A DNA stretch of 64,000 nucleotides. Source: Vitrella brassicaformis CCMP3155. Taxonomy: Eukaryota > Protista > Chromerida. The notes beneath the pieces are model-generated. The model saw only the letters and a program-made list of their open reading frames with translations, searched no databases and was not told the origin of the DNA. Position 1 is the stretch's first letter; every line of letters starts with the position of its first letter. The stretch lies in assembly GCA_001179505.1 (NCBI GenBank), contig CDMY01000447.1:186001-250000 (forward strand), in the 5' to 3' direction. Shown here in pieces: positions 3,001-39,500 of the stretch. The position numbers and the translations under genes are program-made.

Positions 3001-4929
3001 NNNNNNNNNNNNNNNNNNNNNNNNNNNNNNNNNNNNNNNNNNNNNNNNNNNNNNNNNNNNNNNNNNNNNNNNNNNNNNNNNNNNNNNNNNNNNNNNNNNN
3101 NNNNNNNNNNNNNNNNNNNNNNNNNNATACCTGCACTCACCCACCCACCCACCCACACACGCACACACACGTGCCCAAATCACTTGGTGTCGGCCTGCCT
3201 GTCTCTCTGTCTGTCTGTCCGTCGCCTCCCTCCCTCCCTCCCCTCAGTGCCTCACCAAGGGTGCTGACGGATCTGGTCGATTTGGAGACGTTGTTTGGGA
3301 TCCACCATCAGCATGCCGCGGATCAGATCGGCAGCTCCTTCAGAGACCCAACGGGGCAGCTGATCGATCGAAGACACGCAAGCACCAACCATCCTTCCAT
3401 CCAGTGAGTGAAGTGAGCATGTGATGTGACGTCTGCGTGTGTAAGTAGATACCTCGTAGTGGCCATTGAGTATCTTCCCGTAGAGCTTGGCCGTGTCGGG
3501 GTCCTCGAAGGGCAGGTACCCGCATATAAGCGCGTAGAGGATTACCCTGCAATGCATCCCATCCACAACACGGCACAACACGACACAGACGTGTATGGTA
3601 GGTATGCGTTGTGTAATGCATGCAGGCTGCTTGGGCTGGCTTGGCTTGGCTTGGCTGGCTCACCCACAGGACCAGACGTCACACCCAGCGGGCACGTAGT
3701 GATGTCCAGCGATCATCTGCAAGACCACACCACACAACACAACACACGTGAGCGACCAAGAGAGCATTGGGTGAGGAGGAATGCATGTCTGTGTGTGTGT
3801 GTCGTGTCTCACCTCAGGGGCTGCGTAGCATGGCGACCCACACGCCGTCTTGAGCAACTGACCGGCCTGCACTCACACACATGCACAGAGAGACAGAAGA
3901 TGATACCGCGCCCAACCCGGATGTGTGTACATGTGCCGACGGCTGATGCATGGAGGCATGTGTGTATGTTCCCCCTCCCTCCCTCCCTCCCTTACGTGGT
4001 ATGTATTCGATAGTCCGAAATCCACGATCTTGATGTTGCGATATTCATCCAAGAGAAGGTTCTCGGGCTTCAGGTCCCTGACAACCACAAAATAAAAGGG
4101 AGAAGAGGGCGAGACACGCGGTCCCCAGAGGAAACACATCTTCCTCCCTCCCCGTCTGCCATCTACCTGTGTACGACCCCCATCTGATGGATCTTTTCAA
4201 CGCCAGCCAGGATCTGGTGAAAGAACTTACACGCCTCCCTCTCCTTGACCTTGCGCTGCGCCACGATGTAGTCGAAGAGCTCCCCGCCCGACGCATACTC
4301 CATGATCAAAAGCAACTGGTCGTGCGTCTGCAGAATCTGATAGACACACAGAAGAAGACAGCCTTGAGAAATGGATGGATAGCTAGGTGAGTGCGGTACG
4401 GTACCTACCTCGTATAGCTGAATGACGTGAGGGTGTCGGATTCGCTGCAGAATGCTGATTTCACGCTTGACCCTGTTCCAGTCCTCGTCCCCCTGGATCT
4501 TCTCTCTCTCCAATATCTTGATAGCAACTTTTTCGTCTGAACACCAACCAACAAAACACACACACACACACACACGCACATCCAACACACGTGTACCCAT
4601 TCCCCCAGCCCAGCCCACAGTGCCCCGTCTTCTCACTCACTCGTCTTTGTGTGGGTCCCGAGCCTGACTTTGCCGAATGTGCCTTCGCCGATCGTCGCTC
4701 CCAGGACGTAGTCGCCAACCTTCTTGACTTGGTGCTTCTCGCTGGTCGCCCCGGTCGCCGCAGCACTTGCCCCACTTGCCGGGCTGGAGCCGTCGATGTT
4801 GGCACGGTCACATGTCGGGCCGGAAGGGCTGACCGGCGCCGAAGGGTTGCTCACACGCGCTGTCGGCTCAGGCATGTCGGTGATAGGGATGAGCGGCACG
4901 GGGGAGGTGGGAAGCACACGCACGGCCAT
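1..4929 (-). CDS. SNF1/AMPK-like (CAMKL) Ser/Thr kinase, multi-exon, with UBA-like segment and long low-complexity C-terminus; 3' end runs off the window
   Basis: Spliced exons give IGEGTFGKVRLG, EKVAIKIL, HPHVIQLYE, MEYASGGELFDYI, HR/DLKPENLLLD, DFGLSN, TACGSPCYAAPE, DVWSCG, GYLPFED and DPKQRL. ATG at 4929, GT-AG introns. Confidence 0.9.
2827..3126. other. Assembly gap (300 N) inside a kinase intron
   Basis: Exactly 300 N after a poly-C run. ATACCTGCACTCA occurs on both sides (2796-2808 and 3127-3139). Confidence 0.99.
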
Positions 4930-5546
4930 GGTCAGTCAGCTATGCGTGTGGAGATAGACAGAGGGAGGTGGGCCTAGGCTGAGTGGAGGGAGGGACACCT
5001 CCAGGGGCCGACGCTAGAAGGCACCTTGCTGACTGCGCCACCCTCACGAGCTGGCTGGTACGGTCGAACGAACAATTGAAAGGTCGGATGGACACGTCTT
5101 TCGCCCCGGGGTGTGCTGTGCCTCCGATGTGACCTTCAAACCGTTACTGTCAGGGTAATGAGTTCCCCGTGTAACAGATCTCCGGCCACCGTGAAGATCT
5201 TTTCCTGCCCTCCTTTGGTGTGTGCGGCCTCGTGTGTTTTGCAATGGTGAGCCGGAGAACTTTTGCTGTTTCAAAACAGATCTATCTATCCATCCATCCA
5301 TTCGTTCGTTTCGCATCACCACCGCTATCCTCGCCATGAGTATCCATAGACACAAAAACAGGACGCCCTTACACACATCTGTCTGCCTGTCCGTCACCTG
5401 TCATATCGGTCCCACTCCCCGTCTCAAGCCACCATGCCCTTCATTGTCTCGAAGAATTCCCTCTGTTCGGGAGACAGCTCACGTAGCATCTGCACACACA
5501 ATGACATGCAGGCAGTGATCGTGCCGTGAGCCGTGTGTGCCCCTTC

Positions 5547-8179
5547 CTAGGTGGGTGGGTGTGTGCGTGCCTCGTCTGGTATTTGGCCGAAGTCGGCGCC
5601 CGTCGCTTTCCACGCTTCCCTCATATTCTCCTTGTCCTGCATGAATGAGACACATCCGCACCGCAACACTCGTCCGTCCATGTGTGTCGGCCGGCGGTCA
5701 TCGCCGCTTCCTCTTTGCTTTCGTCGGTCACGCACCTGTTCTGTGAGTTCGCCCGAGGTCATGACCTCCTGTATCTCTCTCATCAACGGCTCGACTTGCC
5801 GCCAATCGAAATCTATAAACACAACACAGCACAGACCACACGAGGCAGATGCACTGGCTGGTCATGTATTGTATTGTGTTGTTGTCGTTCGACGATGCAC
5901 GGCGCCGCAGGGCAAGGCAAGGCAAGGCAAGGCACCGGACGCAGGTACGGTACCTTTGGTGAGTTTGGCGAGTGCTTCAAGGCTCTCTGCGTCATCGTCG
6001 CCGAGCCCCTCGAGGCCGCCCCCTTCCTGCAGCTGCTGCATGAGCTTGTTGAAGTCGCCCCCGCCCTCGCCACTCATGAGCTTCATCAGGTCACCCGCAC
6101 CCTGCATACATCAATCCATCCATCGATACGCCCAAACACGTCAAAACACATACATCCTTTCTGTCTGGCTGGGCTGTATAGTAAGTATGTATGTGTGATG
6201 TGATGTTTGCCTACGGGCATTTGGGCCTGCATCCGTGACCTCCATGCCTGCTCTGACAGCTGCTGTGCCTTCCTGAAGACACACACGCCAACCAACAACA
6301 CAACAAGCACCATAATATGAGGCGACAGACAGACAGAACCACGCCTCTGCTCCCTCCCTCCCTCCCTCCCTTCAGGCACCTCAGCAACGTACCGTTCTGA
6401 TATGCCGAATATGACTCTAAGCTGGTCGACCTTTGTGTCGTCCCTATCCTCGTCGTTGCCGTCCAGACATGCGAGCGTGTACCGCAGGTAGAGCGACTCG
6501 AGCCTGTTCCGCGGCGCACGGCCGCTGTAGACGACGGGCGTGATGTTGACGTTGGACGCGAAGTGCATGAACAGGTGGGCCGCTGAGTCCATGTAGGCCG
6601 TCAGGGCATCCATCGCAGCTAGAAAAAGCAACGAAAGAAAAGGGGACGGACGAGAAGCCGTTCCAGTCAGTTTGCACCCCTTGTATTGTATCTGTCTGTC
6701 CGTCCGTCTGGCTCACCGAGTGTTGTGTTTCCCTCGATCTTGAGTGCGTCGACGGCGTTTTCCACCAGCCTGGCCAGCTGCACGCTCACCGCCTCGGCGT
6801 AGCTCTCGGCCGCGTCCGCATCGGTGAGATTGAGCTCCCGCTGCAGCGCCCGCAGCAGCAGCAGCTTCTCCTCCATCACAGGCGGCAATGGCTCCATCTC
6901 CTCTTCTTCCGCCTCACCCTCTGCGGGTGACGATGATGACGTGTCAGCTGATGTCGCGTTGGCGGCGGCGGAAGTCTTGTTTTGTTGCTGTGATGCTGCT
7001 GCTGTCGTGTTGACGATCCCCTCGATCGGTGCCTCAAAGATGGGCGAGTCGATGCCCATGTTGGTCAGGGCTTGCAAGAGCTCGGGCGAGGGGGGCTCGG
7101 AGGAATCCACCGCTGTCGCTGCTGTATCGTTGACCGCCACCCCGCTCGCCACAGTCGTTTCTGTTGTTGTGGCGGTGCTGTTGTTGGCAGAGGGACGGGC
7201 AGCGTCGGCCTTCACGGCGGTCTCTTCCTTGGTCGGCAGCGGCTCAAGCTTCACCTCGGGCAAGACGATCGTGTTTGCCTCCGGGAACTCGCCGGGCGGC
7301 GCGCAGGCCTCGAGCAGCTTAAATGCATAGAGCGCCATGGTCTTGTGTGGCGCTGGGTCGCCTCCACTGATTTCCTTGAATGAAGATGCCCGTAGGCCCT
7401 CTCTGGACCGCCTGAAGAAGCCGCTCAGCCACTTGCGGGGCTGGGGGGCGGCCGGGGGAGCCGAAGAGGGGGAGGGAGAGAGGGAGAGGGACTCGGCGAA
7501 GGGGGGTGCGGCAGCTTCTTGGGCAGTGGTGGAAGCGGATGGCTCGGAAACACGCTCTGCAGCAGTCGGGTGCCATAGAAGAAGACGTGCCTTCTGCGCT
7601 CGTCGTTCATCGTCTGATCGTCTTACCAATTGCCAGCGTCGTCGGGTCGGCATTGTTGACGGCTTTCCTCAGGTCCACCACGGGCGCAGGCGGGGCATTG
7701 TTGACCTCCCTCGTCACCCACAACGCCTCCCTCGCCCGCTTCTCCCTCTCAAGCACACTTGAACGGCCACCAAACCTATCAAACACATCCTCACGCCGCG
7801 CGGTCAACGCCACGACGACCGCCACGACACTCGCAAACAGCACACCCTTCTGCCAGAGTGGCAGCGACTGCATGGAAGGCCACAGGACGAAACGAATCCA
7901 CTCAGCTCCCCTGTAGGCCGGTGCCGGGGGCGGTGTTGGTGGCGAACGGCTGAACCATCTCGCGTGGAGAGCCACGGCAGATTCGCATTCACCATCAGAG
8001 GCAGAGGGCGATGGACACAATGGATGAAGCGTCGTGCCGTGTTGCCTTCTTGGTGGTGGGTGAGGCCTGTGCAGGGCAATATGACGCTGGAGGGGGCGAG
8101 ATCTTCGGAGGGAGGGCGGGATGAAGCCTGACGCGATGGGTGGAACGATGAGAAGGATCAGCGGCAAGATGGATGGCAT
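5547..8179 (-). CDS. Plastid-targeted alpha-helical membrane protein, possibly Tic110-like
   Basis: Signal peptide MPSILPLILLIVPPIASG, then F and an R/S/P-rich transit peptide. One TM helix (GVLFASVVAVVVALTA), then helical segments (LRALQRELNLTDADAAESY; LESLYLRYTLACLD...DQLRVIFGISE). The family call is pattern recall only. Confidence 0.6.
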
Positions 8180-8472: not shown

Positions 8473-11400
8473 ATGGGCCCGTATCTGTTGTTTGGTCCTC
8501 TGGACGTGCTCAACCTCCAAGGGGCATCCATCGGCAAGACCCATGCGCTCACGTGTCAAGTAGATGTGGTCGCCGGCACCACCGGACAATGCATCAAGCG
8601 GGCATCCATACAGGTCCATCCATCCATCCAAAGCTTCAAACGACCAACGCAAAAGACCGCCAACCCACCGTATCTCTGTGTTATGGTGCAGATCCCTCCG
8701 TCGAGCGAGGGTTCCATCGCTATCGACCTTCCCGCATTGAAGTCCCTCTCCCTCAGCCTGACCGTCACAGCCGACAGGGACAACACGACCACCCTCATCG
8801 GCCGTGTGTGCATCCCATCCTCATGCTTGCCGCCAGCGGGGCCCAACGCGCCGCCCTCTGAGGCCCTTATCCCGCTCGAGGGCACGCCCAGGGGCAGCGA
8901 CGCCCGCGCCGCATACGAGCCGTATGAGTATGACCTGAGGAGCGCGTGTGCTGGTGGGGTGAGGCTGCCACCCCCGCCACACGGGCGTGTGGGCGATTTG
9001 CGTGTGATGGTGCGGTATGTGGACGCCGCCATGGCCGCTGGGCAATCGGAGGTGGACAGATCATTCATCGCACAGGTAACTCTTGTGGGAGCGAAACGTC
9101 ATGTATGTATACGGGTCCATACTGGTTTTGTTTTGGTGTGTACGCAGGACTTCTACAATGTGTTGCTGACGAGTCTTCACGAGTCCACCTCCCCCCACTC
9201 CCTCAGCCCCTCTGCACGCCGCATGCCGCCTCTCCCCCAGCAGACACCCCCAGGCCCAGCGCCACACACAGCCACCCCTCCCACACACATGCGCAAGGGC
9301 GCCACGGTGGACGTGCTGCCGTCGCCAGGGGCCGTGAGTTACTACTCGGCCCAGTCGGGCGGACCGTCGCCTGCGGGCAAACTGGGGAGGGCGCAGACGT
9401 ACGGGACGGGAGGGAGGGGGGCGTGGACACCGGAGAAACCCAGAACTGCACGTAAGGTTGGAGAGGGGGGGATTCATTGGGTACAATGCGGCATTGTGGG
9501 TGGGTGTGTCGGTGAGCAGGAAGTCCTGTGTCGCCTGATTATGCGTCGCGGGGGATCGTCATGCGACGCACATTCACCATGGGCACACGGACCAATACAG
9601 TGAGCGCGGGTGTGTGCAAATGGGACGGCAATTTGCACACCTGCGTGTGTGTATGGGTTGGCAGCAAAACAGCGTAGCGATAGACGAGGAGAGCAAATCG
9701 CGCCGGCTCACCAGGGAAGAAGGTACGCGCCAACACGGGAGTCGCATTCCTGCCCACGTACGCTGCTGTGTCTGTGAGTATACAGACAGATTGGCGGCTG
9801 AGGAGCGGCGTCGTGAGGAGCAGCAGGCGGAGATAGACAACCTGGTGTACCATCGCACAGAACACCTGCAGCAACTCATCAACTCACAAGACGGTAAGTG
9901 GGTGGGTGGATGGTTGGGACGATGGGCGGTACGGTACCACAAGCACATTTCCACCCATGTGTGTGTTTTGGTGTGCAGAGAAGCTGGCCATGTTGGGCCC
10001 CATGCAGGAGGAGGCGGAGGCCATCAAGGCCAAATACGGCGAGCTCGAGAAAGCCAGACTAGACATGCAGGTACTCATGCAGAGACACGCACACACACAA
10101 CTTTCCACACACACAAGTGGGAGCCTCTTCGTTATCTGGTTATGTGTAGGGGAGTTTGAAGGCGGCGACGGAGAAGTTTGAGTGTCGTCAGCAGGAGGCG
10201 CAGCAGCTGCTCAGCGACCTCCACCAGGCCAAAGCCGACACCGAACGCCGCGATGTCGACCTCATCGGAGCCAACTCCGCAAAGGACACTGAGATCGAAC
10301 TACTCAAACAGACGCTCAGAGAGCATCAGCAGCAAAATGAGGTCGGCACCACGCAGGCACGGCACCTTCAGTGGTTCCAGGTGTATGTTGGTGCGTGAAG
10401 GCGTTGTCGCAGTGCATTGTGAGTCGCGAGGACTACCAGAAGCAGACGGAGGAGCTGCAGCAGACAATACGCCTGTAAGCAAGCCATTCATCGAGACATG
10501 ACATTGACAGACATGAGCCAATGGATCCCTGTCTGTCTGTCAGTGAGCGTGCTCGCCGCGAGGCCATCGAGAAGGAGGCGCAGCGGGCAGCAAGAGACTT
10601 CGAGGCGTGTGTGTCGAGTGAGACTGCCGTCACGCAACAAATCCTCGTCGAGAAGGAGCATCTCACCCAACAGCTAGCCGCACTCAGGACACAGAACGGT
10701 GAGTACACACACACTGAGGCCGACACTCATTCATTTCTGTGTGTGTATGCCCACTCCTTTTCCCACCAGATGAGTACCGTCGCAGTTTGGCTGCCTTCGA
10801 GGAGGAGGCCACGCGGCAGACGGCAGACAAGACAGACAAAGAGAAAATGGTATGTACTCGTGTGTGTCTGCATAGGCTCGCCACCTTCCCTCCCACCTCC
10901 CTGCGTGTCTACAGGCCATCGAGTTGTCGTCTGTGCGTCGGGAGCTGGAGACGGCCCTCAAGGAGATACACAGACTCGATGCCGCCAGACAACAACAGTC
11001 AGCAGGGGAAAGCCACGAAACAGCCACAGTCATCTCCCGCCGTTCGTATGTGTCGTGTGCAGGGCATCCGAGATGGATTCGCTTCAGCGGTCCGCCGAGT
11101 CTGAGCTCCGCGAGGCTGAGAACGCCAGGCTGCGGGCACTCGATGAGAAGAATGAAACACTCGCACAGATGCGGTGAGTGAGAGGGGCAAGGAAAGAGAG
11201 CGACGCAACCTTTGCCCCGTCTGCTGCAGGCAGGCAGAGCGGTTGCTAGAGGAGCGTGATGGCATGATCAGAGTGAGAAGAGGACGCTTAGCATTGCAAG
11301 CCTCTGAGTGTTGTTCTGGTGATGTGTGCAGCCTTTGGAGGACGAATCCTGCGCCAAGGACGCCCACATCCACGAGCTGACCAACCGCATCAACTCACTC

Positions 11401-25329: not shown

Positions 25330-27166
25330 CTACCGTCCCCCTCCCCCTCCCCCTCCCCCGCCNNNNNNNNNNNNNNNNNNNNNNNNNNNNNNNNNNNNNN
25401 NNNNNNNNNNNNNNNNNNNNNNNNNNNNNNNNNNNNNNNNNNNNNNNNNNNNNNNNNNNNNNNNNNNNNNNNNNNNNNNNNNNNNNNNNNNNNNNNNNNN
25501 NNNNNNNNNNNNNNNNNNNNNNNNNNNNNNNNNNNNNNNNNNNNNNNNNNNNNNNNNNNNNNNNNNNNNNNNNNNNNNNNNNNNNNNNNNNNNNNNNNNN
25601 NNNNNNNNNNNNNNNNNNNNNNNNNNNNNNNNNNNNNNNNNNNNNNNNNNNNNNNNNNNNNNGCCCCTCCCTCCACCACCTGCACCAACACAACCCACAT
25701 CAGGCGAGTCAAACGCACGATTCATTCAACATCCAACGATCTATGCATGCAAAAGAGCTGCGTTTGGTTGGCCCTTACCTGCTCCGGCCTGGCCCTCCTC
25801 GGGCTGCTGCAGGAGGCTGAGGATCAGCGCAGCACCCAATAACAGCCACCACTGCAGCATCCAACGGAAGGCACAGATGTTTATCAGCCAGCGTCACCGG
25901 GCAGGCAGTGTGCAGTGTCCTCGTGTCTGTCTGTTTGGGTACGTACGTATTTCTGGAAGAAGGACGGCTCCTTCTGCTCCTTGCCGTCCTCCTTGCCACC
26001 CCCTGACACACACAAAGCAGCAGCAGAGCAGTGAGTGGTTCAGACACGGCAGCCGCCGGCTGGACGTGCGGTGCGCTTCGCTGTCACCGAGCACCCTTAA
26101 GTAATCACCTTCGGGTGGTCTTGGAGCCGTCAGTATGTGTGGCCTGACCCAATCACACGCACAGCCACGATATGGACGCATGTGTCGCTCTTTTCAGGTG
26201 TGGTGTGCGTGCTTACGTGTCTGCCTCTGTGGGCGTTTCGACAGCGATCTCAAGCTTCTCCAGCAAATCATACCCGAACTGACCCCACACCCCCACACAC
26301 AGCCATCTCATCTCATCTCACTGAAGCTTTGAGGGGCGTGTGTGTGTGCATATGTTCAATCACCTCCCGTTTGCTCGAGAAGGACATAGCTATGGGCGAC
26401 CCCTTGTCCGTCAGGTGGAGACTCAGCACACCCACACTCCCCTTCAGGTCCAGCCTGTCCTGTAAGCAGGATGTCCGCACGCACACAGACACACACGACA
26501 TCGAGCTTCGGGCCTGTGGCAAGCTTGTGTGTCTTTAATCTACCATCTACCAGAGCAGTGGATGCCATGATGCTCTCGTCCTTGGCGTCATTTGGAGTGA
26601 GGCGAAAGCTCAGCCACAGGCGCCCAGCCTGAAGGACGGACGAACCGCACGATTGATGCCAACACACACAGCAATGGATACCCTAAGGGGAAGGGCAGCA
26701 CGGTGTGTGTGCACTGCTTACGTGTTGAGTCTGCTGTAGGTGTTCGAGTGGGAGTGGCGGGTCAGCGACGGTGGCGCTTCCCTCGAGCACCACTCCTGTC
26801 ACCGGGCTGCGCACCAGCTCCAAATCAGCGTAGTGACGCCACGCACCTGCAGCCAACCACGCCATACACACACAGACGCTACACGTACACTCCCTCCAGC
26901 TGACTGACTCGCTGTGCTGTACCTGAGCTGGAGTCGCCAGGCAAGATGCACTCGAGTTTGTAGGTGTTGTAGGACGACGACACTGCCCTCGTTCTTTCGA
27001 TTCCAAGCAAGCAGCAGAGAGCGGCCGCAGCCAGGGGCAGGAAAGGAGTGCAGCGCCTCACTCGGGATGGGCGGCTTTGGCTTGATCTGTGATGGGTGTG
27101 CAGGGGAAGGGACGATGCTGCTGGTGTGTCCGTGATCTGCGGCGACGTCCGACACTCAGGCGCCAT
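25330..27166 (-). CDS. EMC10: ER membrane protein complex subunit 10-like
   Basis: N-terminal hydrophobic signal (FLPLAAAALCCLLGIERTRA). C-terminal PRPPEG...KEQKEPSFFQKY/WWLLLGAALILSLL followed by a Gly-rich tail matches the EMC10 SFFxKYW-TM-Gly pattern. The tail crosses a gap and the start codon is inferred. Confidence 0.7.
25363..25662. other. Assembly gap (300 N) in the Gly-rich last exon of EMC10
   Basis: 300 N flanked by C-rich runs. Confidence 0.99.
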
Positions 27167-27335
27167 CGTGATGAGTCTTCTCCACCTGCATCGACGCAAG
27201 AGGGCATTTTTTCATTCAATATGGGATCTGTGGCAGCAATGCCTTATCCGTCATCTTACCAGGACGTTGCTGCACTTTCCTGGTTCTCTCCTCAGCTAAG
27301 CGCGCAGACCAAACCCTGGACCTCAAACCCTACGA
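27102..27335. repeat. Repeat copy A: EMC10/HPR divergent promoter plus first EMC10 codons; inverted copy at 34529-34745
   Basis: Direct alignment, e.g. GGGACGATGCTGCTGGTGTGTCCGTGATCTGCGGCGACGTCCGACA and ATGGGATCTGTGGCAGCAATGCCTTATCCGTCATCTTACCA match the reverse complement of copy B apart from substitutions and small indels. Confidence 0.95.
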
Positions 27336-29911: not shown

Positions 29912-30405
29912 ATACGGACAGACAGACGGCGGGGAGGCGTGTGTGGTGAGACTTTTGTGCCCATTACGCATGATTGTAACCGAACAACTTTATCGATTGT
30001 AACGGGACAACAGAGACACAGAGACGTCTGAATATAGAATGCAGGCAACGATGTTGCAGCTGCTGCAAATGCACACACTCTGGCACCCACTCTCTTGTAC
30101 CGCTGCGCTGCACACTTCATCCCCTTCCTCCTCCCTTCGACACCCGGACCTCACATAGACAGTCAGTCATCCAGTCAGTATACACCCTGCACACCTGACC
30201 GCAGCGAAGCGCCGTCCACCACTAGCAACTTACGAGTAGCAGAGTCGGCACCAGAACAAATGCACACATCATGAACAGAGAGACAGAGAGACACAGACAG
30301 AGACACAGACAGAGACACAATACATCCATCTCCTTGTGCCAACCAACCATTCGAATATAAAATGCAGGCAACGATCGACGTTACATGTGGTGTACACACA
30401 CACTT

Positions 30406-33751: not shown

Positions 33752-34340
33752 CAGTAAGTATCGCTTAAAGCAATCACCGTATAAACCAATCATTTCCATA
33801 AAGCAATCACCCCGTCACGGGGGGGAAACTGTCATTAACCGTAACACTCGTCTGTGTGTCCGTGATACTCATACAAATACAGTCCCATCAGCACGCAGAG
33901 TCAAACAGGCTCAAGGGGAGGAGGGATCAATCCCCGCCCCATCAGCACACCCCAGTCCCGCAAACCCTCCCCTCCCTCCCCCACGCAGACAGAAGCTAGT
34001 CGCACGCGCGAGGGCGATAGACAAGCGAGAGCGAATCCATCCAGACACATGACTGAACCCCCGACCCTTCCACCCCTCCTTCTCCAACAGCGCATGAGCC
34101 ATGTGGGCGATGAACACGTTGGCATCGTGTCCCAACACACCGTCACACGTCACCACCAGAGGGCAGAAGGTCACGCGGGAGTCGCAGACGGCCGAGCGGT
34201 ATTTCTTCTTCTTGGCGGTCTCGTGCTGCTTCAGGATGGACTTGGTCGATCGGTTCTTGGAAGCGTAAGACGTTGCGTCAGGATCCGTAATACAGATGTC
34301 AAATCACCCCGTCACTGATTGCTTTATGCGATACTTACTG
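33752..34340. mobile_element. MITE-like TIR element (92 bp once the insert is removed), Tc1/mariner-style CAGT termini
   Basis: 25-bp TIRs at 33752-33776 (CAGTAAGTATCGCTTAAAGCAATCA) and 34316-34340 match at 24/25. TAAAGCAATCACC is repeated internally. Flanks are TG (left) and TA (right). Confidence 0.8.
33819..34301 (-). mobile_element. 5'-truncated non-LTR retrotransposon (RLE-endonuclease, CRE-like), 483 bp, with 14-bp TSD
   Basis: Encodes FDICITDPDATSY...KKKKY...FCPLVVTCDGVLGHDA...WIRSRLSIALARATSFCLRG, stop at 33911. Identical AATCACCCCGTCAC at 33805-33818 and 34302-34315. Confidence 0.88.
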
Positions 34341-34528: not shown

Positions 34529-34745
34529 TCGTAGGGTTTGAGGTCCAGGGTTTGATCTGCGCGCCGAGGAGGGAGAATCAACAAAGTGCAGTGGTAAGAT
34601 GACGGATAAGGCATTGCTGCCACAGATCCCACATTGAAATGGCCCTTTTGCGTCGATGCAGGTGGAGAAGACTCATCACGATGGCCCCTGACTGTCGGAC
34701 GTCGCCGCAGATCACGGACACACCAGCAGCATCGTCCCTTCCCCT
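34529..34745. repeat. Repeat copy B: inverted duplicate of 27102-27335, upstream of the aquaporin
   Basis: See copy A. Retains ATG at 34681, giving a 27-codon uORF MAPDCRTSPQITDTPAASSLPLARHAA* (34681-34764). Confidence 0.95.
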
Positions 34746-34879: not shown

Positions 34880-36195
34880 ATGGCAGCAGATCCGCCCGCT
34901 GCTTCTGAATTGAAGATGGCGTCATCTGATTTCACATCTCGTGCCAGTTCGCTGGCAGGCGAAGCACTCGGCGTGGCCTTGCTGCTCTCCATTGGTGAGG
35001 GATTCGGCGCCATAGCGACGCTGCTGCCCGGCAACTACGCGATCTGGCAGGTGGGTGCGTGTGTGTGGGCGTGGAATGGATGGAGTGCACCGAGGCACTT
35101 GTATCGTCGGGTGTGCCATTGCAGGTGGCCATTGCGTGGGGCGTGGGGCTGGTGTTAGCCATCCATGTGGCCAGCAAACTCAGCAACGCCCACCTCAACC
35201 CCGCCGTCAGCATCGCTCTGCACCTGGATGGCTCCAACAAGATGACAGTATGCACACGTCAGACAGGCAGGCAGGCATCGTCTCTGTGGTCTGCCATGGT
35301 ACATGTATATGATTGTCGCTTGTTGGTGCAGGCGACGGATATGGCGCTATACCTGTGCGGCCAGTTCATCGGCGCTTTTGCCGCTGCAGCGCTCGTCTAC
35401 GGCTGCTTCAGAAGCCACATCGAGTCACTGCAACGCGACGGCACCACTTTGTCAATGCTCACGGGGGCCTCCATCTTTGCCTGCTACTTCCCGCCACCAG
35501 GCAACACGTGAGCACGTCTGCTCTCCCTTGGACAGACAATCCATTCATCCAGCCAGCGACAGGGGTGTGTGGCCTGGCCTTTTGTGTGTGTGTGTGTGTG
35601 TGTGCTTAAGGTATGTTGACCCCTACGAAGCGGTGACACCCCAGCGAGCCTTTTTTCTGGAGTTCCTCGCTACTGCATCTCTTCTGGTCGTCATCAAAGC
35701 CATGGCTCATGAACCAGCCAACGATCCACAGCGAGAACAATTGGGGCTGCTGAGTAGACCTGCTCCCAAGCCCAGCGTGTGGCTTCCGTCGTCTGTGCTG
35801 GGGGTGACGCTAGCCATCTTGATAGTGTTGATAGCGCCGATGACGCAGTGCTGCTTGAACCCCTGCAGAGACCTCGCACCACGAGTGCTGCTGTGGCTAT
35901 GTGGTGAGTGAGGAGGGCACTGTGGGTGGGGGGTGCCTGCTTCAGATAGCTAGCTGGTGGCGTGACAATCTGTGTCCTCTTGTCTGCCTTTATCCATGCA
36001 GGCTATGGCCAAATAGCGTTCCCGGGTCCCCGCAAGATAGAATTGTGGCTCTACATGGTGGCGCCGACCGCAGGCGCCATTGCAGGAGCGTTTGGGTACA
36101 ATTTGGTGGTCCGGCTGAAGGAGCAGCAGAGACTCAAGAGCAAAGAGGAGAGCGAGCCGGGCTCGCCCAGAGTCGCGAGGGCCTCCGCCCTTTAG
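34880..36195 (+). CDS. Aquaglyceroporin (MIP family, GlpF-like)
   Basis: Six TM segments. First motif AHLNPAVS; second motif LNPCRDLAPR with the GlpF-type Asp after Arg. GASIFACYF and LWLYMVAPTAGAIAG also present. Confidence 0.93.
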
Positions 36196-36559: not shown

Positions 36560-39500
36560 TCAGCCGCCTGTGGTCTTGAGAATGAAGCACCCCACAGGGC
36601 AGCTGAAGGTGGCCTTGGCCCGCTCCAGGTCGCAGTCGAGCGACGTCGTCCATCGCAACGGCTGCAGCCCATCTGGCCTCCCTCCCTGCGCATGATGGGC
36701 GGTGGGCGTCTTGTCCTCCTCGTGCTGCAGGTTCGTCAGCTCCTTCTTGCCCGCCATCATGCTCAGATACCTGCCAGACAGATCCAATCCCGGCAAACAC
36801 GGTGGGTGCTGTGGGTGGTGTGGGGGGTCGTGTCATTTCATGTACCTGGCGGCGTCTCCCGTGCCAGTGAGGATGACGATCAAGGAGTTGGCCGGCGCCG
36901 CATCGTAGAGGCGCCTCACGTGCCCCTCGATGGCTCGAAGGCACGACTGACGGGCGTCGGATGGCAGCGGGGGAAACAGGGCGCGGGAATCACGCTGAAT
37001 CGCCTCCAGATCTATGTCAACACACACAGCAGAGCAGCGATGCCTCTGCGCTGTTGTCATCTTGCTCATCCGGCCATGTGTGTACCGATGTCATTGCTGC
37101 GCGGGCTGCCGTCGCCCTGCCCGTCGTCCATGGCACCCTCCCTCTCCCTCTCCCTGTTCTTGTCCTTGTCCTTGTGCAGCGGCTCGAGCCCATCCCTCAC
37201 CCTCTGGTACACGTGCACCACCCGCTTGACGCGATGGTTGAAGGTGTAGAGCTTGCCCGTGTCCATCCCAACATTGGCCGAACACAGCCGCTGGTAGTCA
37301 CGCAACACGCACACCGACACACGGGGCACACAACCGGCCGCCGCGCTGGCACCGAGTGCGTGTGCTTGTGGGGGTGAGCGTTTGCCAGAGCCGTTCTTCT
37401 TGCAGGGGGGTGTGAGTTCCATGGCGCTGGGCAGGTCGGGGGGAGAGGGGGAGTGTGTGTGGGTGGCGGACGAGAGGCGGCGCTGCAGGGCCTCCATGTG
37501 GTTGACCGTCTCGGCGTCAGATTCCGTTTGGATGGCCTTCACACCCTGCACACATCCAGACAGACAGATAACACACAGGATATCACACGACATGATGCAG
37601 TGAGTGTCTCCTCTGTCTCGTCTCACTCTCCCTGGCCTGATAGATCTTACCTGGAACATGGGTCCGATCAGCGTGTGCTTCATCCTGTGTGGGACCGAGT
37701 CGCACAGCACCACCCGATCCGTCGGCTCAAACGCCACACCTCCCACACCAACCTCACCACCCAACACGCATCCCCCGCCACCACCATTGCCCATCGTCGA
37801 CCGCCCTTCATGATCCTCTTTTGCAATCGTCAACGACTGCAGAGTGTTGGCTGCCCCCGAGAGGGGGCCGGCCTGTGAGGAAGTTGATGCGCATGCGCAT
37901 GGGGCGGGCACCGTGGATGAGAAGGGCACTGGGGCGTTGGGTGCCAGGGAGCCGCCGAAGCCGGGGCCGTTTTCCAGCTTGAGGATGGCCAGCCGGAGGG
38001 CGGCCTTGGCGTCCTCGACTGAGTCGTGTCCGTCTTTCCTATCGAGACCCTCCTTGTGAAGATACGTCTTGACCTGCATGAACCCATGCAGCACTCAGCC
38101 AGACAGACACACAGACGAGGTGGGGGAGGTGTTGTGTTGTGTTGTATGGTGGAAGGGCTGCGTACGAGGTATTGCAGAGATGACTTGTTTGGCGGCCTGG
38201 GGTGGGGGTAGAGGAGGGCCGTGTCCAACACACGGGTGTGCACCAGACGGAGATACCTATGTGTGTGTCGTGTACGACAGCAGAAGGATCCACCATCAGG
38301 CCGTGTCTCTATCTTTGTGCGGCGGCTCACGTGAGATCGTTTTCCATTGAGTGTCCGACGAGTATGGCGTCATGGGGCAGGGCGCGACGCATCTCCTCGT
38401 GCACGTCAGACAGACCCGTTGTCACATCTACCAAAATGACGATAGATACACAAACCAAACAATCGACAAGTGGGTAACCCATCCCTTCTCCCTCCCTCCT
38501 TTTCCTTGCGTCCCTCTGCTCACCTTTGAGGGTCTCCTCAGAGATGCCGCTGTATCTGGTGAGGTAGTCTGTGACCTTGCCCGCTGGCCTGACAAACGTG
38601 TCCACCACCGTCTCCCACCGCACATTGACGATCGACACCCGCGTGATCTCCATCCCATTCTCCGTCTCACACATCTCGCAGTCAAGACCGAACAGCTTCG
38701 CGTGGTCAGGATCGTCCTCTATGCGGTCCAGCAGCTGGGTGGGCTCGGCGTCTGCAGCAGAGGCCTGCTGCTGCTCGCCGTCCAGCACGATAAAGCCACT
38801 TGGAGGGTTGCGTGACGTCGGGGGATCTGCAGAGGTGAGAAAAGCGTCTGGTGCATTGATTGGCAGTGGCTGGTGCGTTGCGTACCGAATGCGGGATAGC
38901 CATTGGCGCGGAGGTCATCGGGGGAGGGGAAGTAATGGCGCACCGGGGGCACCCGACGGGGAGGGGCCGACTTGTCCTGTTTGTTTCTCATCTGCGGCGG
39001 CCGACGACTGTCCTCTGGCTTGACAGCGTGATACGTCAACAGGCGCTGACAGGGCACGGACACACAGACACGATATGACCAAGAGTGGGCTGGCTAAATC
39101 GGTGTCACACGTTCATCCCCCCTCCACACGCATCGCATCGCACCGACCTCCACAAAGGAGCACCCGGCATTCCTGTCGACTGGCTCGTAGCGCCTGCAAC
39201 ACAAACAAAACAGAAACCACCAAACATCCAACGAACAAGCCAAGCCCCGTCTATCTCTCTCTCTCGTGGTCTGGTCTGCTGCATCCATCCAGCCATACAT
39301 GGTGCATGCGGTTGGCTCGCCCCTGTTGACGGTCTTGAGCAGCTCCCTGAAGGCCTCTCTGAAGGTCAGCTGGTCCAGGTAGGGCACCATGACGACCAGC
39401 GCCTGGCTGACATCCACTGGGGAGAGGTCTATCCAGTCGCTGCCGTAGCCGTCCTTCTCCCGGTCCTTCATCGCCTGACGCATTTCGGGCGGCAGGAACG

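Follow-up and report, generated by a model that had tools for sequence, protein, structure and literature searches.

A 5'-truncated R2-like LINE nested in the hairpin loop of a short inverted-repeat unit in Vitrella brassicaformis

In a 64,000-nucleotide stretch of the genome of the chromerid alga Vitrella brassicaformis CCMP3155 (contig CDMY01000447.1; hereafter, the window), a fragment of a retrotransposon encoding part of a restriction-like endonuclease (RLE) interrupts a short unit with terminal inverted repeats. Is this a case of a retrotransposon that recognizes the sequence of a DNA transposon, or one of nesting at a site that the host repeat sequence did not select? The former had been suggested by a reading of the DNA letters alone, made before any database search (hereafter, the sequence-only reading). 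We address the question by examining, in turn, the insert and the family to which it belongs, the host unit, and the sites occupied by other copies of the family.

The insert and its family

The 483-nt minus-strand insert and the identical 14-mers that flank it (Table 1) were confirmed as first described. No third copy of the 14-mer, even with two mismatches, was detected in the 187.6 kb of sequence scanned. Comparison with ten other copies of the same family placed both breakpoints of homology at the edges of the 14-mer repeats. The homology of the insert to these copies begins at ..TT|TGACATCTG, where 2 nt could equally belong to the end of the target-site duplication (TSD), and stops at ..GACAGTTTCCCCCCC, flush against the TSD; by our own arithmetic, the chance of finding a 14-mer repeat at both breakpoints is about 4^-14 times a few. 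Because the identity match at the 5' junction runs 2 nt (TT) into the TSD, a microhomology, the true TSD is 12-14 bp long. The 14-mer is not part of the ends of the element in other copies, as it is absent from their loci. Together, the breakpoints and the family match bear out the original description of a truncated RLE-type copy with a 14-bp TSD and without a poly(A) end.

Frame 2 of the minus strand of the insert encodes 129 amino acids (34300 down to 33914), the peptide already quoted in the sequence-only reading, followed by a stop codon (33913-33911) and 92 nt up to the junction, where the G7 of the plus strand is the C7 tail of the element strand. This portion of the open reading frame (ORF) corresponds to the C-terminal RLE, from the catalytic Asp of the FD(I) motif (FDICI) through K..KY to the end, and excludes the reverse transcriptase (RT), the CCHC knuckle, the RHNE motif and the first catalytic Asp. 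Because the insert retains no more than the C-terminal half of the nuclease plus the 3' UTR, it was non-functional from the time of insertion. A repeat search of the window detected no further copies of either the insert or the host unit.

Table 1. Coordinates of the insert, its target-site duplication and the host unit in the window
Feature	Position	Strand	Remarks
Left terminal inverted-repeat arm, CAGTAAGTATCGCTTAAAGCAATCA	33752..33776	+	25 nt, 24/25 (96%) complementary to 34316-34340
Three direct 11-bp motifs, TAAA(G/C)CAATCA	33766..33811	+	Starts at 33766, 33782 (1 mismatch) and 33799; resemble sub-terminal repeats
Left stem of the perfect 13-bp inner hairpin, CATAAAGCAATCA	33797..33809	+	Partner 34316-34328, 100% complementary
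TSD, left copy, AATCACCCCGTCAC	33805..33818	.	Hairpin loop, preceded by the final 5 nt of the left stem
5'-truncated LINE insert, 483 nt	33819..34301	-	Identity to Vitrella copies
3' UTR, 92 nt, ending ...AATGACAGTTTCCCCCCC	33819..33910	-	C7 tail at 33819-33825
Last 129 LINE codons and stop	33911..34300	-	Invariant columns, R2 profile match, R2 fold match
TSD, right copy	34302..34315	.	On the element strand, its final TT could also be read as a continuation of the element by two bases
Right terminal inverted-repeat arm, TGATTGCTTTATGCGATACTTACTG	34316..34340	+	Aligns to the L011 reverse strand through CTTACTGTAYAC

The 129-aa peptide matches unnamed proteins of V. brassicaformis CCMP3155. The nucleotide identity of the insert to Vitrella copies and the 300-N convention for scaffold gaps, common to the window and these scaffolds, agree with the origin of the window; a protein search with a nearby exon (38327-38788) gave no match. 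The copies compared with the insert were nine from scaffolds of this strain (assembly GCA_001179505.1; L001, L002, L004, L005, two in L006, L007, L008 and L009) and one from a separate JGI contig, L012. Nucleotide identity between the insert and the nine genomic copies ranges from 76 to 95%, with 91-95% to the 3' ends of six of them and 76-82% to L001 and L009, which are older copies. All 11 copies share a common 3' end, vary in the point of 5' truncation and have no LTRs. The nine genomic copies end in ...GAGTGTTACGGTTAATGCAAGTT, often followed by GTC.., and the 3'-end variants in the family are ..GCAAGTTGTC and ..GACAGTTTC7-8. After ..GCAAGTT, most copies read GTC(T/A)C.. (3' junctions at 8713 and 9447 of L006 and in L002, L001, L009, L004 and L007), where GTC may be the final triplet of the element or may reflect a slight preference for certain targets; GTGAC likewise opens the window TSD when read on the element strand, and A-rich runs follow the 3' end in three copies.

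The closest relative of the insert is L012 (sample 3300017148, Ga0186167_105294), a longer copy with 482 of 485 identical positions (99.4%), which is truncated at another point and has different flanks. It ends in ...AATGACAGTTTCCCCCCCC, the same tail with C8. Because L012 carries this tail, the C-run is a templated trait of a young subfamily, and an untemplated addition of the C7 was rejected. From the genomic consensus of nine copies, the insert differs at 14 of 475 positions (2.9%). At this level of divergence, a 28-nt pair of TSDs stays intact in about 45% of cases (our own arithmetic), so that intact TSDs alone were rejected as proof of recency. The insertion is nevertheless recent, as the sequence-only reading maintained, because of its 99.4% identity to L012. 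By these sequence comparisons, the family is apparently still active in Vitrella.

A nearly full-length copy, with one ORF starting at 3960, occupies approximately positions 3914 to 8718 of L006; allowing for duplicated sequence around a 300-N assembly gap, the full-length element is about 3.3 kb long. The 5' end of this copy (CCATGAGTGAGTCGGTG...) is also present in another copy, in L002. In the ORF, RT motifs (..GVRPIGIGE.., ..DA.NAFN.., ..TQGD.., CWYADD) are followed by a helical linker, a CCHC knuckle (CDHCNQPLTVDHALCC) and the nuclease motifs RHNELRD, VRAD, FDICI and KKKKY, in this order. Vitrella copies additionally contain an acidic, Ser-rich, low-complexity insertion of about 90 aa (..SDSDGSESDMDENENAPSEAQE..SSASSASSS..) that separates the TQGD motif of the RT from the YADD box (approximately 5300-5670 and 6850-7100 in L006; P0010, P0011, P0014); neither the MMETSP relative P0015 nor the family consensus has it. 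Within LINE copies, the stretches flanking 300-N scaffold gaps duplicate each other (L004, 1-1070 and 1373-2757; L005, 34-950 and 1253-2454; L006, 4501-5670 and 5971-7138); these duplications are probably an assembly artefact, and they inflate gene models, among them P0004 and P0006 with their internal repeats.

The insert family is an RLE-type (R2-like, early-branching) non-LTR retrotransposon. This relationship emerges at the level of profiles and folds. Pfam searches with the 129-aa peptide and Vitrella P0005, P0009, P0010 and P0015 gave nothing useful, and a single-sequence phmmer search of the PDB gave no matches; R2 was reached only with a profile of 37 sequences, which matched the R2 proteins in the PDB, the RLE reference proteins compared here (9nl2, 1e-17; 9nl3, 9dou and 8gh6; range 1e-17 to 2e-8), and also the RT of human L1 ORF2p (2e-16). 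Another, weaker part of the profile match aligns the CCHC and RHN motifs to R2 residues 940-1021. A profile search of 1.84 billion representative proteins retrieved 18,877 relatives at E <=1e-3 and 973 at E <=1e-30, many of them 1000-1200 aa long; the cluster members of ten relatives carry no informative names. In 37-53 relatives, the columns C, C, H, C, H (of RHNE), D, D and K show little or no variation, and the YADD box is present (CWYADDSSALG). The Pfam RVT_1 model scored 21-28 bits in six of nine full-length relatives, just under the 29.6 cut-off. No APE (Exo_endo_phos) domain was detected by Pfam in the Vitrella N-terminus or the nine full-length relatives, and the Vitrella N-terminus has no recognizable Pfam domain.

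The AlphaFold model of P0005, which spans the end of the RT, the linker, the knuckle and the nuclease (pLDDT 91.8, pTM 0.88), has R2 proteins as all seven of its best fold matches in the PDB (E 7e-8 to 3e-6, 420-560 aligned columns). Weak later matches include the PD-(D/E)XK nucleases BstEII, MspJI and EndoMS and the cap-snatching endonucleases of bunyaviruses and arenaviruses. The family thus combines a non-LTR RT, a CCHC knuckle and a PD-(D/E)XK nuclease downstream of the RT, and a single ORF without an APE domain. Its genomic copies show the footprint of target-primed reverse transcription (TPRT), namely, a common 3' end, variable 5' truncation, no LTRs, and a TSD at the window copy. Early-branching LINEs are defined by a single ORF with an RT, a gag-knuckle-like CCHC motif and an RLE (PMC5678591), and the profile, column and fold results bring the Vitrella family within this definition.

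The host unit

Removal of the insert and one copy of the TSD leaves a 92-nt unit with a predicted folding energy, as single-stranded DNA, of -20.7 kcal/mol (z = -8.5). Within it, the inner hairpin pairs CATAAAGCAATCA with TGATTGCTTTATG around a 9-nt loop, CCCCGTCAC (33810-33818), and TAAAGCAATCACC forms a direct repeat at 33766-78 and 33799-811. The motif TAAAGCAATCA has five matches with at most one mismatch in the window, compared with 0.35 expected; the host unit contains three direct copies and one inverted copy of TAAA(G/C)CAATCA.

An exact-pattern scan of metagenome contigs with the terminal 23-mer identified a sole contig, L011 (JAAUYB010153000.1), in which positions 478-502 are identical to the 25-nt left terminal arm and which contains four motif copies in all. 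Between CTAAAGCAATCAC and CTTACTGTAYAC, the window unit and the reverse strand of L011 are collinear, a stretch that takes in the hairpin and three copies of the motif. Where the window carries the insert, the L011 loop is uninterrupted (AATCAGCCCTGTACTGATT), and this paralogous empty site supports the reconstruction of the pre-insertion unit. With L011, the host unit qualifies as a repeat family whose flanks are unrelated. The second terminal arm is missing from L011. Apart from L011, the unit recurred neither in the remainder of the window nor in some 120 kb of sequence from Vitrella scaffolds; overall, about 190 kb of related DNA yielded no further copy.

The label MITE, applied to the unit in the sequence-only reading, is reasonable and partly supported: the unit is short and non-coding, has terminal inverted repeats and recurs in L011, but has no demonstrable TSD. 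The flanks read ..GACTG|CAGTAAG... on the left and ...CTTACTG|TATAC... on the right. Vitrella has been reported to contain very little class 2 DNA, along with 632 kb of LINEs (Woo et al. 2015; PMC4501334, supplementary file 2). The unit could instead be a non-mobile, low-copy foldback or palindromic remnant, or a regulatory hairpin, an interpretation that we consider possible, if somewhat doubtful, and that leaves the retrotransposon reading unaffected. It would account for the ends without a TSD (..CTG to the left, TATAC.. to the right), for the single other copy found, itself devoid of one terminal arm, and for the absence of the unit from L001-L010 and L012. It is less easily reconciled with the occurrence of the same 25-nt terminus and motif array at an unrelated locus, L011. 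Furthermore, TA abuts two of the three observed termini (the right end in the window and the L011 terminus; the left end in the window has TG), which is compatible with a decayed TA TSD.

Each terminus of the unit reads CA|GTAAGTAT, which is splice-donor-like, and its complement on the other arm, ATACTTAC, is branch-site-like. Donor-like CA|GTAAGTATCGC and branch-site-like GCGATACTTAC occur at 33752-33764 and 34328-34340 of the window and at 478-490 of L011, where the last motif copy ends in the acceptor-like TTGCTTTAG. Inspection of ORFs around the L011 unit revealed no coding in the flanks and thus no exon continuity. It seems improbable, although worth stating, that the host unit is an introner-like MITE and, separately, that the resolvase-like nuclease of the LINE weakly prefers extruded hairpin loops. 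If true, either reading would make the nested insertion informative, on the interplay of transposon and DNA structure or on intron gain in chromerids.

An intron-containing aquaporin/MIP-like gene (34880-35510, plus strand, ATG at 34880; NPA motif in ...SNAHLNPAVSIALH...) begins about 540 bp downstream of the host unit, so that the insertion lies in the upstream region of this gene. One copy of an inverted dispersed repeat of 234 bp with 87.6% identity (27102-27335 and 34529-34745) is located between the host unit and the start of the aquaporin-like gene; no paralogous gene was found beside the other copy at 27102-27335. A short tandem repeat, (ACAGAGACACAG) x 3.9, is present at 30275-30319.

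Choice of the insertion site and mode of insertion

The overlap of the TSD with an internal repeat of the host unit, the third TAAAGCAATCA motif, pointed out in the sequence-only reading, is real. From this overlap came the proposal that the LINE family is sequence-specific for a sub-terminal motif of a DNA transposon or MITE and hence a parasite of a parasite, an idea in keeping with the predominance of target specificity in four of the five RLE clades (PMC4640811). The check suggested along with it, a search for a target motif shared by the collected copies, had the outcome that its proponent had named as contradicting it. The 3' flanks of the ten other copies are mutually unrelated, including that of the near-identical sister L012, where the sequence after the 3' end is TATATAGGTAGTCGG. 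Neither TAAAGCAATCA nor the 14-mer occurs at the loci of any of these ten copies; one of the copies is located within a Ty1/copia element and a second where a host gene model ends. RLE elements without site specificity do exist, in the HERO clade (PMC4640811). The 11 junctions examined include no spliced-leader, U2, rDNA or microsatellite target. Since insertions of the family lie in unrelated sequences, the sequence of the host repeat did not direct the choice of the site, and motif targeting appears exceedingly unlikely.

The copy in the Ty1/copia element (L002, 4264-8840 and 8843-10656) is 5'-truncated inside the RT and nested after the ...RPDLSYVCS region of the polyprotein; it follows that nesting in other transposons happens without a common target. 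In L009 (10001-11695), the Vitrella gene model P0016 joins a ubiquitin-like-domain protein to a 5'-truncated LINE fragment, reflecting either an annotation chimera or an insertion in the 3' part of the gene.

A second form of targeting would depend on DNA structure rather than sequence. RLEs resemble archaeal resolvases, and second-strand cleavage by R2 proceeds via a branched four-way intermediate (PMC6895275, PMC5678591); a nuclease related to Holliday junction resolvases might thus prefer hairpins or cruciforms and nick at the loop-stem boundary of the 13-bp hairpin. The first-strand nick indeed coincides exactly with the 3' boundary of the 9-nt loop that closes a perfect 13-bp stem. However, the two nicks are asymmetric relative to the hairpin, and no hairpin spans the junction at the reconstructed sites of L001, L002, L006a and L009 (z of -2.5, -0.1, 0.0 and +0.3, respectively, vs -3.5 in the window). 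We consider structure-directed targeting very unlikely.

The locus is an ordinary nested insertion. Very probably, it arose by target-primed, 5'-truncated insertion of an R2-like, single-ORF LINE of about 3.3 kb into the loop of the hairpin repeat, undirected by the repeat sequence. In this scheme, with nick positions and order of events that we infer from the insertion product, the element nuclease would have nicked the plus strand where the hairpin loop ends on its 3' side, separating C33818 from the T that is now position 34316. The 3'-OH released in this way would then have primed cDNA synthesis from the C-run at the 3' end of the element RNA (...GACAGUUUCCCCCCC), the end of the primer and the RNA tail showing no complementarity, and reverse transcription would have ended after 483 nt. 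Cleavage of the minus strand 14 bp away, joining of the cDNA end through the 2-nt TT microhomology, and fill-in would have produced the 14-bp duplication. A TSD of at least 7 bp was not found at L001, L002 or L009, nor one of at least 6 bp at L006a, in searches of both junctions. Because these four older copies have no recognizable TSD, the 14-bp stagger is a feature of the window copy and not a demonstrated trait of the family.

Palindromes are a recognized type of fragile sequence. The site is a palindrome, and the 5'-truncated copy has a 2-nt microhomology at its 5' junction, as might be expected if a LINE cDNA or RNA fragment had been patched by end joining into a double-strand break at this position, independently of the element endonuclease. 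Such a capture is hard to square with the clean 14-bp TSD and with the complete 3' end of the element, the same as in L012, accompanied by neither deletion nor filler DNA. These are marks of endonuclease-dependent TPRT, and we attach little probability to end-joining capture.

The Vitrella family among known elements

Without support for the reading of a retrotransposon that targets a DNA transposon, the locus is routine, and its modest value lies in annotation: it reveals that a chromerid alga harbours a young LINE family of the RLE type that is not site-specific and has two copies at 99.4% identity. This as yet unnamed family, of an already known type, is characterized by a compact, 3.3-kb single-ORF element and an unusual 3' end with a short C-run. 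Public data contain over 18,000 cluster representatives of the very large group to which it belongs, and standard Pfam annotation gives this group no name. For the R2 systems now used in genome engineering, R2-like elements without site specificity provide comparators of some interest.

The host unit resembles MITEs (for example, those derived from Stowaway/Tc1-mariner) and foldback elements in being short (92 bp) and non-coding, with 25-nt inverted termini, internal short motif repeats and recurrence at a second locus. Unlike MITEs, it has no clear TSD or known autonomous partner, and its second copy is missing one terminus.

The best sequence-profile and fold matches of the LINE family are to R2 (R2Bm, R2Tg, R2Pm; PDB 8gh6, 8ibw, 9dou, 9nl2, 9nl3). 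The two have in common a single-ORF organization, in which the RT is accompanied by an alpha-helical linker, a CCHC knuckle and a C-terminal PD-(D/E)XK nuclease but no APE domain, and both leave TPRT-type 5'-truncated copies without poly(A). Unlike R2, the Vitrella family occupies unrelated sites and has an N-terminus without a Pfam domain. Rfam searches of the locus and the full-length copy yielded only sub-threshold noise, with no R2 3' RNA element and no HDV-like or twister ribozyme, another difference from R2. Fold identity between the Vitrella model and R2 is only 12-15%. The Vitrella knuckle, CX2CX7HX3C, is one residue shorter than the CX2-3CX7-8HX4C of RLE LINEs (PMC5678591).

In its dispersal over unrelated sites, the Vitrella family is similar to HERO, the one RLE clade with many families that are not target-specific (PMC4640811). 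NeSL/Utopia, R4/Dong/Rex6 and CRE are likewise RLE-bearing single-ORF LINEs. The conserved motifs LLVDA.NAFN, WYADD, RHNE.RD, FDVRV, KKRKY and FTPLV resemble those of uncharacterized RT-RLE proteins common in marine animals, a lead only. NeSL/Utopia, R4/Dong/Rex6 and CRE target spliced-leader genes, U2, rDNA or microsatellites, unlike the Vitrella family at its 11 junctions. Some Utopia families generate TSDs of about 20 bp (PMC4640811), comparable to the 14 bp of the Vitrella window copy.
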